Shown: positions 3,032 to 33,514 of the stretch, one piece after another | Layout: every line of letters starts with the position of its first letter | How positions within the stretch are numbered: position 1 is the stretch's first letter | Sequence record: NC_041878.1 | Length of the DNA: 64,000 bases | Strand: one strand, 5' to 3' | Translations under genes and position numbers: made by a program | The notes under the pieces: generated by a model | What the model saw: the letters and a program-made list of their open reading frames with translations, nothing else | Database searches by the model: none | What the model was told of the DNA's origin: nothing

Positions 3032-3316
3032 ATGCAAGTAACACTGAACGGATTTACTTTTACAAAGAATGTTGATGGTACTGATAACATTCAGTCAGTA
3101 CTTAAAAACAAAGATAATAAAGCATTAGGCGGGATTGTCAAAGATGCTAAGAAGATGGCAAACTTACAACGCCTGAAACGTTCGCCTGATGTTCTGGTAT
3201 TCCTGGCTAAAGTACAGGAAGAAACTGAAAAAGTTTACTTTGAACAAAAGAAACCAAAACCTTACAATAAGTACAAAAGGAAATTTAATCCTTGCATTCA
3301 TTCTATAAATGTGTAG
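3032..3316 (+). CDS. hypothetical basic protein
   Basis: ORF behind TTGCAA..TAGAAT promoter. Confidence 0.75.
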   Translation: MQVTLNGFTFTKNVDGTDNIQSVLKNKDNKALGGIVKDAKKMANLQRLKRSPDVLVFLAKVQEETEKVYFEQKKPKPYNKYKRKFNPCIHSINV

Positions 3317-3904: not shown

Positions 3905-4164
3905 ATGAATAATAATATACCACTGCTGGAAAGTACTGTCAAGGAAAAAAACAGGGGAACTTTCATGTTCCCCCTAAATGCGACAAAGGCATATATCGGA
4001 CTTTGTGCGAGCTTCGTTGATCGCATGAGTACTATATCACAACGGCCAGGCGAGTGCAACTATTTGATCTGTGATAAAAATATACTTTCAAACGTGAAAA
4101 GTACTTGCAAAGAATGATTAAAGGAGTATACTTAACTTATCGAAACGAACAAGAGGATTTAAAA

Positions 4165-6998: not shown

Positions 6999-7067
6999 AC
7001 ATTATCAAAAGTACTTGCAATTAGAAAGCGAGTACTTTATAATGATTATATTAAATCAGGAGGATAT

Positions 7068-7235
7068 ATGGACGAACTTTTAAAACTCTGGCAACAATTC
7101 AGTACTGTATCAGTTAACGATGATGATGAAATTGAAGAATCATTTTTGCACTTTGAAAAGGGAACAGACAGATTAGAAGTGTGGAAATGGTTTGAGAATC
7201 AGAATCCTGATTTTAAAGTATCTGATTTAGTTTAA
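7068..7235 (+). CDS. small acidic phage protein (55 aa, not in track)
   Basis: SD AGGAGG; LW..F..V.V.DDDEIEE.FLHF..GT.R.EVW.WFE resembles a common phage family. Confidence 0.75.
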   Translation: MDELLKLWQQFSTVSVNDDDEIEESFLHFEKGTDRLEVWKWFENQNPDFKVSDLV

Positions 7236-7318
7236 TGTAAACATTATCAAAAGTACTTTACTTATTTTGTAGAGTACTTTATAATGATTATAGTTAATTA
7301 AGAGAGAGGGTTTAAGAA

Positions 7319-7498
7319 ATGAAATTATATGCTTATGCGTCTAATAGTGGTGAAGCTATTGCAGTTGGTAGATCTGAGCGTGGTGCTAAATCTACTGCTA
7401 CTAAAAACAAAAGTACTGAAATAGGTTATATCAGTACTATTAACAATATGTACATTCCTACTCATAAAAAAATTAATAATAAGTGGGTATCAATTTAA
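7319..7498 (+). CDS. small basic protein (59 aa, not in track)
   Basis: Promoter + SD GAGG + ATG. Confidence 0.7.
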   Translation: MKLYAYASNSGEAIAVGRSERGAKSTATKNKSTEIGYISTINNMYIPTHKKINNKWVSI

Positions 7499-7570
7499 TG
7501 TATATAAGTACTTGCAAGTTATTTGTGAGTACTATATAATGATTGTACTTTAAGTGAGAGGAAAGAAAAC

Positions 7571-9000: not shown

Positions 9001-9111
9001 ATGCAATTTGTTTTCGGTGCAATTAGTGGTGTACTGATTTATCTGAATTGGGATGTTATCAGTCCCTGGATTGAATCAGTACTGAAATTTACATTAACCT
9101 TTTTTAATTGA
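9001..9111 (+). CDS. small membrane peptide (36 aa, not in track)
   Basis: Promoter + SD GGGAGG; hydrophobic MQFVFGAISGVLIYLNW. Confidence 0.65.
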   Translation: MQFVFGAISGVLIYLNWDVISPWIESVLKFTLTFFN

Positions 9112-9122
9112 GAGAAACAAAA

Positions 9123-19718: not shown

Positions 19719-20072
19719 TTGACAATGTTAGACATTTATATCAGAAGTGACTTAGTGCCAGATGGTTGTGATGAATGCGGTACTCCAAAAGAAAAAACAG
19801 AGTACTACATTATTGCTGAATCAGAAACCGGCCAGCGTCTTAGATTAGAAAGTGTTTCCATTGTGAACCGCGATTATACGGATGAACAATGTGAAGCGTA
19901 TCTTCAACCAACTGTAGATAAAATTAAAAATCATTTAGCTGGTGGCGGTAAACTTAATCCTGATTATTGGTGCGAGATCGATCCACGTTACGGATCTAAA
20001 CGTTACCAGGATTTAGATAGTACTGGCTTCTTCTATCAACGCGAGAAACGCGAAGATACTTATCGCGATTAA
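19719..20072 (+). CDS. hypothetical protein
   Basis: ORF; start TTG 19719 or ATG 19725. Confidence 0.75.
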   Translation: MTMLDIYIRSDLVPDGCDECGTPKEKTEYYIIAESETGQRLRLESVSIVNRDYTDEQCEAYLQPTVDKIKNHLAGGGKLNPDYWCEIDPRYGSKRYQDLDSTGFFYQREKREDTYRD

Positions 20073-20271
20073 GTAAACACCAATTCAAGATAATTTCGAG
20101 TACTTGACAAATCAAATACCAGTACTCGAAATTTTCATTTAGTGATCAGCAGTTGTCTAAATTTTCGTGAGTGCGTGAACGTGTATACGAATGCGTATGA
20201 TATGTGCGTTATATACTTGCATATGTATCTGTATACGTGTATACTATCTATAATGAATAAGGAGATACAAC

Positions 20272-20463
20272 ATGACCAAAGCACAGTTTGAAAGTAAAGT
20301 CGATGATGTTATCAACTTAGTAACTCATTCCAGTATCACAATACCAGCAGCAGTTGAAAAGGTATGCGGCGAACCCATCAATAAAGAGAATAGCGAACTG
20401 CAATTCTCATTACAAGATGCAGTTGAAAAAGAATTGCATCCTGAATGGTGGATTAAACAATAA
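20272..20463 (+). CDS. small hypothetical protein
   Basis: SD AAGGAG. Confidence 0.75.
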   Translation: MTKAQFESKVDDVINLVTHSSITIPAAVEKVCGEPINKENSELQFSLQDAVEKELHPEWWIKQ

Positions 20464-20532
20464 ACTTTGTACTTGACAACTATATATCAGTACTGATATA
20501 CTAACCACACATTAAGCGAGAAAGGAAACATC

Positions 20533-20709
20533 ATGGTACAGGTAGATTTGTCAGAACTCAGAACGAAATGGTACAACCTGGGGAAAGCGGGTACTGCAAT
20601 TGCTGGTACTGATGCAGAACTGTTTAACTCACTCGATCCGTGGCAAAAACGGGAACTCCGCAACGCCTACGTTGAAGGAACTACGGAAGCCCTTTCAACC
20701 GTAGCATAA
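20533..20709 (+). CDS. small protein (58 aa, not in track), paralog of 19411..19641
   Basis: SD AAGGA; MVQVDLSELRTKWYNLGKAG... Confidence 0.75.
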   Translation: MVQVDLSELRTKWYNLGKAGTAIAGTDAELFNSLDPWQKRELRNAYVEGTTEALSTVA

Positions 20710-20821
20710 CTCTAACAGGCTATCTTATCATAAAAGTGTTGGCAAAGTCCAGCACTTTTTTTCGTTTTGAAGCAAAAAAATTCCTTGACCTTCCCTGCGA
20801 TATTTGAGAGAATACCTACAA

Positions 20822-20854
20822 GCCAGAACAAAGGCGTAGCCCACCGGGTGCATA
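20822..20854 (+). ncRNA. two-hairpin element copy 11
   Basis: GCC-AGAACAAA-GGC-GTA-GCCC-ACC-GGGT-GCATA after TTGACC..AGAAT. Confidence 0.65.
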
Positions 20855-20892
20855 GGCACGTCCAAAATTCAGTACTCAAATTTTAGATAGAT

Positions 20893-20926
20893 CTCCGCAC
20901 CCTGTGGGTCAGACCGTTACACCGGT
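20893..20926 (-). ncRNA. two-hairpin element copy 12 (convergent with copy 11)
   Basis: ACCG-GTGTAA-CGGT-CTG-ACCC-ACA-GGGT-GCGGAG after minus TTGCAT..TATAAT. Confidence 0.7.
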
Positions 20927-21112
20927 TTATGTACTTATTATACATCAACCACGAATCAATGCAATACCCTAGAGAAAATAAAATTATAAATTCAAACGAA
21001 AAAATACTTGTATTTGTTTGCTGGTGGAGTTAATATCTATTCATCGAAACAAACAACGGCAAGACGAAACAGCCGATAACGTCAAGCCCAACTACGCCTA
21101 GAGGAATTCATC

Positions 21113-31506: not shown

Positions 31507-32300
31507 TGTTTTTAAGATTCTTTTTATCCTTTACTGATTCACAACGAAGTGGATTTTCTGTTGGGAGAAGTCGTGCTGCAAATCAGGCATCAGATGCACC
31601 TGATTTCAAAATCCCATTACGTCAAAGAACAACATTCGGTGCAGTACTTGCAACAATTGCTGCGAAGATGGACAGACGTACACAGTACTTAAACAACTAT
31701 TATCATTCCAGAGAAATATTGGTCAATCTTTCCGAGGAATCAATGTTTCAACTGGAGACATTATGTGTGTCTGAGTATTGTTATTGTACTTACAACTTAG
31801 AAACTAAGATGATTGGTTTTGGAAATACTATACGAGAAGCATATGATGCATCCACTGAAATAGGATTTCCTGGTGTGTCTATTGGTGGTGTATCCAATAG
31901 TACTAAGCCTAATTATATGATTAGGTTTTATAAAGAAAAACCAGAAAAAGAAAAGATGGAATTCACATGTCCAGATGGTTTTTATGAGCAAGTACTTAAT
32001 GAATTAAAACCATATATTGTATTCGAAAAGAACTTTTTCTTTAAGAATTGCACTGATATTCTTGAAAGAGAAGGACAATTCCTAGATGAAGTTATTGATA
32101 ACTATTATGATACGACGATTGCTAATCAAATAAGCTATCATGGTAGTACTTTACATAGTACTGAATTCAAGTACACTGTAAAAATGTTTATGGAAGATGA
32201 TCCTGATATTTTACAGAACAAAGATTATCACGAATCTGGTTTTCGTCTATTAGGTGCTATGTGTCTTAAAATCATGCTGATGACAGATGAAACATTTTAA
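31506..32300 (+). CDS. hypothetical protein
   Basis: TAATG coupling. Confidence 0.8.
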   Translation: MFLRFFLSFTDSQRSGFSVGRSRAANQASDAPDFKIPLRQRTTFGAVLATIAAKMDRRTQYLNNYYHSREILVNLSEESMFQLETLCVSEYCYCTYNLETKMIGFGNTIREAYDASTEIGFPGVSIGGVSNSTKPNYMIRFYKEKPEKEKMEFTCPDGFYEQVLNELKPYIVFEKNFFFKNCTDILEREGQFLDEVIDNYYDTTIANQISYHGSTLHSTEFKYTVKMFMEDDPDILQNKDYHESGFRLLGAMCLKIMLMTDETF

Positions 32301-32321
32301 TTTTTTATGCTATAATGTATA

Positions 32322-32975
32322 GGACGGTACAGTGTATCGTCCTTTTTTAATTGAGAAAAACTCTGAATGGCCTTGAAGAACAAGGATAGTTTTTACCTGA
32401 TTCCGATGACAATGTAATTGGACAGATGAGTAGTTCATTCAGTACGAACAGCAAAAGAAACCCGTTAGATGTTGGCATAGTTTGTACCACTCACGGCAAT
32501 GCGGCTGTATAAAGAAACATTACAATAGTGACATGTTTCCTAGATAGACATATAAGGATACTACCTTACCATACTCTATAAGGGAGTAGTATCAGATTTT
32601 GTACAATAAAGTTGCGTCCAAAATTTGAGATCTACAAGTACTATGTTTGATTGTATAGACATGTACTAAGCGAGCTAAGACCTCGACCGTTGTTAGAACT
32701 GAGATAAGAAGAAACCGAACAACCCGCTTCTGTACTGCAAAGTAATTCTCAATACAATATTGTTATGACTATCATCGTCAGATTTCATCTCCCCTGCGGG
32801 GGATGAAATTGTATCAACAAATCTCGTCAGTAATAGAAGTGTTGAACGTACAGTAATTATTAAGTAAGAGAGGTAAATCACTACAGAACTGAAACGTCAG
32901 TGGAAGTTCAAAAGTGATTTACTGGAACATCGTGAGATGTTCCTTGTATAATGAATCAGCTACGTACTGATTCCT
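32322..32975 (+). ncRNA. candidate large structured ncRNA (~650 nt)
   Basis: No credible ORF; TGcTATAAT upstream; 7-10 bp stems at 32557/32586, 32782/32802, 32873/32913, 32924/32936 (GUGA loop), 32953/32967; strand inferred. Confidence 0.55.
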
Positions 32976-32989
32976 AAAGTGAGATGTAA

Positions 32990-33514
32990 ATGAAGATCGT
33001 GTACAAATGTAAGCAAACAGGTGAAGTTAGAAGTACTGTAAATTTGAATGAATTTAGTGGTTATAAGATACAGATTGAGCATAATAAAATAAGCAAGATA
33101 ACGGAATTGTTAAACAACGAAGTACTTGCTTTAATTAATTATCGCCCGACTAAAACCACACTCATACATAAAATTGAATACAATGGACACGTAGAATACA
33201 GGTACAATAATAATAAAGTTGACTCAATGTACTTTGAATTTAATAACAAACGATACGGTGAATATAAGAAATTTAATCCATCTGGTGAACTAGTAGACAG
33301 GAAGTACTACTATGAGAATCGAGATATTACCGAAGAAGTTATGCGATTCATTGGGTACAAAGATGATCCGAATGATTTCAAATATTACACATTTCAGGAA
33401 GATGAAGTGTTTAATTTGATGATGAAATACGGATTATATTTTAGGTTTTGTTTTGAATCTGAAAGGGAAAGTTCAGAGTTTGACTTGATTACTGAGTACT
33501 GTCAAATTAACTAA
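32990..33514 (+). CDS. hypothetical protein with MORN-variant-like segment and array-like C-terminus
   Basis: YGEYKKFNPSGELVDRKYYYEN; FQEDEVFNLMMKY. Confidence 0.75.
   Translation: MKIVYKCKQTGEVRSTVNLNEFSGYKIQIEHNKISKITELLNNEVLALINYRPTKTTLIHKIEYNGHVEYRYNNNKVDSMYFEFNNKRYGEYKKFNPSGELVDRKYYYENRDITEEVMRFIGYKDDPNDFKYYTFQEDEVFNLMMKYGLYFRFCFESERESSEFDLITEYCQIN

Follow-up and report, generated by a model that had tools for sequence, protein, structure and literature searches.

The window analyzed here is the first 64 kb of the genome of Pectobacterium phage vB_PcaM_CBB (KU574722.1, 378 kb, Mimasvirus), and its coordinates are those of the record. Between the CBB_70 stop at 32300 and the CBB_71 start at 32990 lies a gap of 689 nucleotides (nt) without annotation (32301-32989), with Dam methylase and cytidylyltransferase genes downstream. 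It is by far the largest gap, and the sole one of such size, within the annotated 22- to 45-kb stretch. A first-pass annotation of the window had described it as a densely base-paired interval free of open reading frames (ORFs), lying after a TGcTATAAT element, and had suggested a large ornate phage RNA in the size class of ROOL and GOLLD. Position and content were given correctly, and a mechanical scan showed only short, nonconserved ORFs, the longest of 62 amino acids (aa) on the minus strand. We found that the interval is very probably the gene (copy A of four in CBB) for a structured noncoding RNA of ~600 to 650 nt and that it belongs to a family of conserved, pseudoknotted, strand-specific RNA genes that mobile elements carry.

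Folded as RNA, the plus strand of the gap has a minimum free energy of -177.5 kcal/mol, compared to -148.3 +/- 4.6 kcal/mol in dinucleotide shuffles (z = -6.3), which bears out the dense pairing; the z value on the minus strand was -3.9. The first-pass annotation had proposed comparison with Rfam and collection of homologues as checks. No Rfam 15 family matched the gap when the whole window was searched at gathering thresholds, and a search with copy A, copy D, and an Escherichia coli island copy at E <= 10 returned terminator-like noise only. ARAGORN found no transfer RNA (tRNA) or transfer-messenger RNA (tmRNA) in the 64-kb window. These results agree with the earlier opinion that the RNA is not a tmRNA, RNase P RNA, or group I or II intron. 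Neither full-text literature searches nor the CBB genome paper yielded an account of these loci.

A blastn search with the gap retrieved 62 jumbo-phage records (Mimasvirus, Eneladusvirus, Asteriusvirus, and Munch-like; identity, 68 to 77%), whose hosts are Escherichia, Salmonella, Klebsiella, Cronobacter, Serratia, Yersinia, Erwinia, and "Xanthomonas." The gene context was identical in all 12 records inspected. For the conserved core delimited with an orthologue profile (Table 1), 66 distinct full-length homologues were collected, with a mean identity of 68.5%. Nucleotide identity of the core to relatives was 0.72 to 0.76, compared to 0.60 to 0.79 for the flanking genes, and in the most distant genera the core was conserved better than those genes. 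Searching IMG/VR with two invariant blocks gave several matches per genome, and a second pattern gave a fourth copy. In CBB, the core with its 5' and 3' domains is thus present four times, at ~32, 174, 258, and 336 kb, each time in an ORF-free gap of 670 to 790 nt. Relatives belonging to Mimasvirus, Eneladusvirus, and Asteriusvirus likewise carry about four copies, in syntenic positions. Paralogs are ~55 to 70% identical, orthologues are closer, and over the four syntenic groups of paralogs, Munch-like phages included, identity of the core and flanking domains is 55 to 85%. The genes 3' of the copies are unrelated between copies. Just 11 loci were found in the metagenome collection, indicating that the family is narrow. 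The four diverged paralogs per genome, the pseudoknots, the copies in bacterial islands, and the ~450-nt core with flanking domains go beyond what the first-pass annotation had described.

Pairing within the core is maintained by compensatory changes. RNAalifold predicted 59 pairs from 45 distinct cores, 30 of them with compensatory double changes. Over the 66 distinct sequences, 65 curated pairs were 98.9% canonical, with double changes in 40 pairs (645 cells), although such counts include related sequences from few independent lineages, are inflated thereby, and are not probabilities. When the 3' partner was slid by 1 to 3 columns, 37 to 46% of cells were canonical and 21 to 82 had double changes; within-column shuffles gave 83.8% and 170 cells. 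Covarying stacks numbered 12, compared to 1.25 (maximum, 6) in 100 column-order shuffles. The margin of observed over control counts is very large, and conservation of the structure is very strong; compensatory change of the kind that marks structured RNA was found beyond the positional and shuffle controls. Read on the plus strand, 2590 of the 2609 cells were canonical, compared to 2407 of 2609 on the minus strand, where the 183 G-U cells become C-A mismatches. Since G-U pairs are valid on one strand only, the RNA is read from the plus strand, as the first-pass annotation had proposed. A covariation scan allowing crossing pairs added three pseudoknot or tertiary helices (PK1 to PK3). In total, the helices number at least 15, including three or four pseudoknot or tertiary pairings. 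Among 45 sequences, ~130 positions of the ~450-nt core do not vary, and many of these lie in junctions.

Table 1. Features of copy A and its surroundings, and positions of the other CBB copies
Feature	Position	Strand	Composition or remark
Promoter candidate, sigma-70 type	32287..32316	+	-35-like ATGAAA 32287-92; 18-nt spacer; extended -10 TGCTATAAT 32308-16
5' hairpin	32321..32349	+	10 base pairs (bp), AGGACGGUAC-AGU-GUAUCGUCCU, then U6; terminator scan
5' leader domain	32361..32392	+	CUCUGAAUG; hairpin CCUUG-AAGAA-CAAGG 32371-85; then AUAGUUUUU
Conserved core	32393..32843	+	~450 nt; nhmmer with orthologue profile, E = 8e-116, profile positions 4-465
P0 hairpin	32397..32425	+	CUG-UCC-GAU ... 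AUU-GGA-CAG; conserved loop GAAAAYGUA
Junction and h1	32427..32445	+	UGA 32427-29 with UCA 32827-29; h1 32430-32 / 32443-45, T-loop-like loop UUCAUUC
h2 enclosing h3	32448..32508	+	h2 32448-52 / 32504-08; h3 32462-65 / 32493-96; variable hairpin, loop CAUAGUUUGUA
PK3 tertiary helix	32499..32551	+	AUG 32499-501 with CAU 32549-51
h4 hairpin	32514..32539	+	GAAACA / UGUUUC; contains ACATGT
H-type pseudoknot (h5, PK4)	32553..32593	+	h5 UAAG/CUUA 32553-56 / 32565-68; PK4, h5 loop GAUACUAC 32557-64 with GUAGUAUC 32586-93
Module M	32596..32624	+	AUUUUG - UACAAUAAAGUUGCGUC - CAAAAU; peripheral
h6 hairpin	32638..32666	+	Loop UUGUAU 32651-56 forms PK2
PK2	32651..32757	+	6-7 bp, loop to strand; UUGUAU 32651-56 with AUACAA 32752-57, ~100 nt downstream
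Pseudoknotted 3' core	32671..32751	+	h7 32671-74 / 82-85; h8 32700-04 / 32747-51; h9 32707-11 / 32727-31; h10 32734-36 / 32741-43
PK1	32689-93 with 32719-23	+	GUUGU with ACAAC (family: GUUGY with RCAAC)
Direct repeat flanking h11	32771..32830	+	Invariant blocks AUCAUCGUCAG 32771-81 and AUCUCGUCAG 32821-30; h11 32783-94 / 32798-808
3' domain	32873..32943	+	Outer stem GUAAAUCACU/AGUGAUUUAC; inner hairpin GAAC-...GUCAGUG...-GUUC; GNRA hairpin GGAACAUC-GUGA-GAUGUUCC
TATAAT and hairpin	32947..32973	+	TATAAT 32947-52; GAAUCAG-CUACGUA-CUGAUUC 32953-73; 5' of the CBB_71 ribosome-binding site
Copy D	record 174,462-174,971	+	Between two minus-strand genes, endonuclease VII and CBB_249
Copy B	within gap 258,047-258,784		
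Copy C	within gap 336,275-336,948		

Most of the stems listed in the first-pass annotation were real, and they fit into the helices of Table 1. Hairpin P0, folded separately in 64 sequences, has more than 10 different stems with one and the same loop. The UGA and UCA of the junction are invariant (pairing in 66, 66, and 65 of 66 sequences), and h1 is canonical in all 66, its middle pair being UA39/AU18/CG9. All five pairs of h2 are likewise 66/66 canonical (e.g., GC45/CG18/UA3 and UA34/AU32), as is PK3 (GC52/AU14), for which sequence L053 has ACA/UGU. The ACATGT pairing noticed earlier is the stem GAAACAU/AUGUUUC of h4, which covaries strongly, with up to 4 to 5 pair types per position and 56 to 66 of 66 sequences canonical. 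Stem h5 covaries with AU, GC, and GU types, and the invariant UAAGGGAG (32579-86) lies between the strands of PK4. This pairing, listed earlier as GATACTAC (32557-64) with GTAGTATC (32586-93), held up: by eye, complementarity is kept with other sequences in other copies (AUCGC/GCGAU, GUGCA/UGCAC, GGCCAA/UUGGC), and it is absent in B-type copies deleted for the region. By inspection, PK4 would be the fourth pseudoknot helix.

Farther 3', the h6 pairs 32646-49 / 32656-59 are canonical in 62 to 66 of 66 sequences (UA33/GC18/AU12/CG3). All six PK2 pairs are canonical in 66/66, with two or three types each (CG34/UA32, GC41/AU25, UA51/AU13/CG2, AU47/GC19), and PK2 occurs as three complete covarying versions, AUUGUAU, UUCAUGU, and GUCGAAU. 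PK1 is canonical in 65 to 66 of 66 (CG41/UA23 and GC60/AU5), and h8 (UA30/CG23/AU8 and CG27/UA24/AU15) and h9 (GC36/AU27) vary in pair type as well. An alternative stack, columns 419-421 / 574-576, was set aside, as it competes with the better-supported h9. The earlier stem ATTTCATCTCCCC/GGGGGATGAAAT (32783-32808), our h11, is kept in all copies and changes from G-C to G-U only: its G strand is invariant, its pyrimidine strand has C or U, and the resulting G-U pairs exist on the plus strand only. The proposed longer-range pair TGTAAT/ATTACA did not survive comparison, with 4.39 bp compared to 4.79 bp in shuffles over 51 distinct sequences; it is at chance level, and the pairing is probably not a feature of the RNA.

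Domains on both sides of the core recur in the family. By eye, a 5' leader of ~35 to 70 nt (YCUGMUUGR, a hairpin, and an A/U-rich tail) is present in copies B, C, and D and in the island copies, and an equivalent 3' domain (~70 to 110 nt, with loop motif GAACGNAGUGA and then a further hairpin) follows most copies. In copy A, two stems predicted earlier, GTAAATCACT/AGTGATTTAC (32873-82 / 32913-22) enclosing GAAC/GTTC and GGAACATC-GTGA-GATGTTCC (32924-43), covary among orthologues (CAC/GUG, CUC/GAG, UUCA/UGAA; ACAUC/GAUGU compared to GCUACC/GGUAGU) and form this domain. Because the 3' domain is shared across the family, the whole copy A RNA would span roughly 32322-32945, with its 3' end near 32945. 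The last stem of the first-pass annotation, GAATCAG/CTGATTC (32953-73), is indeed conserved in Mimasvirus and Eneladusvirus orthologues but shows no covariation and is absent from paralogs B, C, and D. It follows a TATAAT hexamer and may therefore belong to the CBB_71 mRNA; it is probably not part of the RNA.

Peripheral modules within the core change position or form. Module M, as AUUUUG-UACAAUAUAGNUNCGUC-CAAAAU, stands after PK4 in A- and C-type copies. The B-type copies seen carry it inside h10, and both sites are occupied in island copies from Serratia and E. coli. The hairpin inside h3 has two unrelated forms, independent of paralog type. In the copy A orthologue of Escherichia phage UE-S1 (locus L012, 1970-2508), the RNA contains a tandem duplication of ~55 nt, with CAGAAGAAACCCGTCAG...CACGGCAATGCGGCT repeated, and gives two overlapping nhmmer matches.

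The TGcTATAAT element reported earlier is present as the extended -10 of the copy A promoter candidate, which has 10 of 12 consensus matches with TG in a consensus scan and contains an exact TGNTATAAT. In the AT-rich window, TGNTATAAT occurs six times, compared to 6.7 expected, i.e., without enrichment, and support for the promoter comes from conservation across copies: a TGnTATAAT-type element lies upstream of the core in all 13 copy A orthologues, and of 50 distinct copies, 47 have one no more than 80 nt upstream of the core. For some island copies, the nearest match falls within the leader hairpin, and the true promoter is probably the match ~80 nt upstream. The hairpin at 32321-32349 corresponds to an annotated rho-independent terminator in GAP32, and its stem changes in sequence among orthologues with pairing retained. 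It is predicted to serve as the intrinsic terminator of CBB_70 and, in transcripts from the promoter immediately 5' of it, as the first structural element of the RNA. Host sigma-70 RNA polymerase would transcribe copy A from ~32322, in early transcription and with the 5' hairpin first. At 32308-32349, a stable hairpin begins no more than 5 nt after a perfect TATAAT (extended -10, TGCTATAAT), and a second perfect TATAAT at 32947-52, without the extended TG, is directly followed by a stable hairpin in a similar layout. A promoter with a 5' stem-loop may be a recurring design in phage CBB.

A clear terminator at the RNA's own 3' end was found for copy D only. This copy has the promoter TTGGAA-N18-TGGTATAAT, ends at a bidirectional terminator, and is antisense to both neighboring genes, indicating that it is most likely an independent gene and not an mRNA leader; the layout recurs in a divergent jumbo-phage contig. 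B- and D-type copies (locus L065, ~3090-3125; locus L236, ~4033-4060) have an A-tract, a short hairpin, and U7 in the middle of the RNA, resembling a bidirectional intrinsic terminator. On the 3' side of CBB copy C (locus L064, 3340-3400), and in its orthologues, there is a conserved hairpin and then a good TTGACT-N17-TACACT promoter for CBB_524.

Copies were also found in bacterial genomes. A pattern search gave 120 matches, of which 114 were chance and 6 were real; a bacterial chromosomal origin was rejected, as the real matches were all located on short contigs or in mobile elements. In Serratia fonticola and a Serratia sp., the RNA adjoins a large serine recombinase, and S. fonticola additionally has two ParB-like genes, near tilS. 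In S. fonticola GTA-SR07 (locus L175, 3440-4774), the RNA lies in an AT-rich-looking, ORF-free stretch of 1.3 kb beside the recombinase and the two ParB/RepB-like genes, and two 87-aa ORFs, 98% identical, follow. The RNA directly follows a tyrosine integrase in Enterobacteriaceae RIT714 and Buttiauxella and precedes a cI-like repressor gene in Buttiauxella, where a cro-like gene then follows, and in another Enterobacteriaceae metagenome-assembled genome. Among 5426 complete E. coli genomes, 2 have the RNA, and the locus was inspected in one, LR-29-1 (locus L189, 15959-26303). There, an island of ~11 kb between ffs and ybaA contains the RNA gene (~20005-20545) together with integrase fragments split by IS3, DUF4326, DUF488, and DuOB genes, and a resolvase; the DUF488 and DuOB genes match the PADLOC candidate defense system PDC-M45. 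A tblastn search with the island protein family phrog_20749 found no match in phages. By sequence, the copies from islands group with the D-type copy found in a divergent jumbo phage, indicating horizontal exchange.

Other parts of the window gave no further members. Three stretches without ORFs of at least 60 aa, at 348-1370, 6999-7570, and 20464-21112 (1023, 572, and 649 nt; terminal-repeat part), showed no similarity to the gap's RNA family, and a 21-nt match at 9098-9118 is a chance resemblance within a ribosome-binding region.

Of the known large RNAs, the phage-borne ROOL and GOLLD are the closest analogues. ROOL (RF03087) is similar in being an ornate RNA of roughly 600 nt with several pseudoknots, phage or prophage-like carriage, and no known partner protein. 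However, its model was not matched at E <= 10 by any of the three copies searched (A, D, and that of the E. coli island), and ROOL comes from Firmicutes or rumen sources, whereas the CBB family occurs in Enterobacterales with four diverged paralogs per genome. GOLLD (RF01998) is likewise a large structured RNA of phages and prophages in which modules vary around a conserved core, but there was no model match, its length exceeds 800 nt compared to ~600 nt, and its host range is different. Both RNAs often lie beside tRNA clusters, whereas no tRNA accompanies the CBB family in the window or, in a tRNA scan, at six loci with paralogs. ROOL and GOLLD assemble into RNA-only multimeric cages. Group I introns of T4-like phages share with it several copies per genome, a length of 250 to 500 nt, a pseudoknotted core, and swappable peripheral modules. 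In contrast to these introns, the CBB RNA has its own promoter and splits no gene; both of its neighbors are intact, and a stop codon and a terminator precede it. An intron was therefore rejected: CBB_70 and CBB_71 are complete in all relatives, the helix order is not P3-P7-P8, and RF00028 was unmatched at E <= 10.

Bacterial RNase P RNA is similar in size and in having long-range pseudoknots, and the CR-V-like block ACAACCCGCUU loosely recalls the 3' strand of P4 in E. coli M1 RNA; in RNase P RNA, P4 is made by the conserved regions CR-I and CR-V. The RNase P type A and B models gave no match, and the block has no GGAAAGUCC-type partner. This reading was rejected because the block is engaged elsewhere, its CAAC in PK1 and its CUUCU in h9. 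In the distantly related jumbo phage PA5oct, RNA-seq defined two transcripts of 451 and 619 nt, ncRNA002 and ncRNA004, from ORF-free gaps, and ncRNA002 made up ~5% of phage reads, indicating that such RNAs can be abundant (PMC7318152). As homologues they were rejected (locus L066, 1452-1902; locus L067, 617-1235); they gave no nhmmer match, shared no motifs by eye, and are GC-richer.

Several other explanations of the locus can be weighed against this evidence. That the gap holds missed protein-coding genes or a decayed gene is the least credible. Small ORFs have been called in it in Kaldavass, fHe-Yen9-04, and Hallingskeid, but they vary in strand, position, and length between genomes, substitutions preserve base pairs, and insertions and deletions are whole hairpin modules. 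An element acting as DNA (a replication origin, recombination hotspot, or packaging signal) is hardly more plausible; the copies are gene-free, AT-rich stretches, and islands could exploit cis signals of a helper phage. However, the pairing is strand specific, compensatory changes maintain the long-range and pseudoknot pairs, the promoter element, too, is conserved, and no iterons or A+T-rich unwinding blocks were seen by eye, without a repeat scan. We also consider it very unlikely that the RNA is a cis-acting 5' leader of the downstream operon, i.e., a riboswitch, an attenuator, or a processive antiterminator in the manner of HK022 put. The orientation of copies A, B, and C, the terminator-like hairpins at the 5' end of copy A and within B- and D-type copies, and the direct repeat CGUCAG, which could in principle give alternative pairings, would suit a leader. 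In contrast, copy D and its orthologues lie opposite in strand to both neighbors with a terminator at the end, the downstream genes are unrelated, island copies precede divergently oriented repressor genes, and 450 to 650 nt is far above the size of known leaders of these types.

A large ribozyme, with a catalytic site made of the invariant junction nucleotides that would, for example, cleave or ligate RNA or process phage transcripts or tRNAs, appears improbable, if less so than a leader. The number of invariant positions is consistent with it, as is a pseudoknotted core comparable in complexity to RNase P or group I introns, and the junction GAUGA-stem-GA-stem loosely resembles a hammerhead core. 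A hammerhead needs CUGAUGA ... GAAA, however, and the junction reads (C/U)AG(A/U)UGA-stem-GA-stem: the A6 equivalent is A or U, the third stem is preceded by one A too few, and both stem I and a cleavage site are lacking. No Rfam ribozyme model matched, and other ornate RNAs formerly suspected of catalysis proved otherwise. A quaternary assembly of RNA only, such as a cage or ring like those of ROOL and GOLLD with PK2 or other loops as intermolecular bridges, is a specific version of the structured-RNA gene proposed here and, though still unlikely, better placed than a ribozyme. It fits the size class, the phage and prophage-like carriage, the many conserved unpaired nucleotides, the lack of a partner protein gene, and the loop-to-strand PK2 helix with its three covarying versions. 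One ROOL pairing that had at first been classed as tertiary on the basis of covariation turned out to be a kissing loop between molecules (bioRxiv 10.1101/2024.12.08.627333). However, neither sequence nor model comparison links the family to ROOL or GOLLD, no tRNA gene lies nearby, no self-complementarity is evident in the loops, without a systematic check, and PK2 is compatible with an intra- or an intermolecular helix, which the sequence does not separate.

The structured noncoding RNA gene remains our preferred explanation, and several observations weigh against it in addition to the inflation of the covariation counts. The hairpin and U6 directly after the copy A promoter could terminate copy A's own transcripts, and a terminator-like hairpin lies inside the RNA of B- and D-type copies. 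Protein genes directly follow copies A, B, and C in the same orientation, and copy B runs directly into the CBB_350 ribosome-binding site; some copies may also serve as leaders. Both ends of the RNA and its abundance are predicted, no conserved protein partner was found among the neighbors of copies A, B, and C, and the functional proposal below is a guess from context and analogy.

The RNA would fold into a compact globular particle and act in trans. As a tentative proposal, it could be an RNA scaffold or decoy in conflicts of mobile elements with the host or with rival elements. A scaffold or decoy would bind a conserved host or phage partner, or it would self-assemble like ROOL and GOLLD, and the four paralogs, with one core and swappable peripheral modules, may tune partner specificity. 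That the RNA is cargo of mobile elements is supported by the copies beside integrases or serine recombinases and cI/cro-like repressors and by the E. coli copy in the PDC-M45 island. It is rather unlikely, but conceivable, that the family represents a new class among the large functional RNAs, in coliphage-type jumbo phages, and is a ribozyme or an RNA-only, possibly hetero-oligomeric assembly of the four paralogs. In that case, the RNA would be a weapon or shield of mobile elements in conflicts among phages, hosts, and islands and would have passed between lytic jumbo phages and integrative islands of the defense type.

The RNA is a new family of a known kind, the large ornate phage-borne RNA. 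Large ornate bacterial and phage RNAs (OLE, GOLLD, ROOL, and raiA) are rare, and their hosts are for the most part difficult to manipulate. The CBB family is comparable to them in complexity, and because it occurs in an E. coli island and in phages whose hosts include E. coli, Salmonella, Klebsiella, Cronobacter, Serratia, Yersinia, Erwinia, and Pectobacterium, its function is testable in standard strains. The four conserved paralogs, the position-shifting peripheral modules, and the horizontal exchange with integrative islands provide handles on the parts that bear specificity. The annotation of more than 60 public jumbo-phage genomes, in which these loci are blank or filled with spurious small ORFs, can be corrected.

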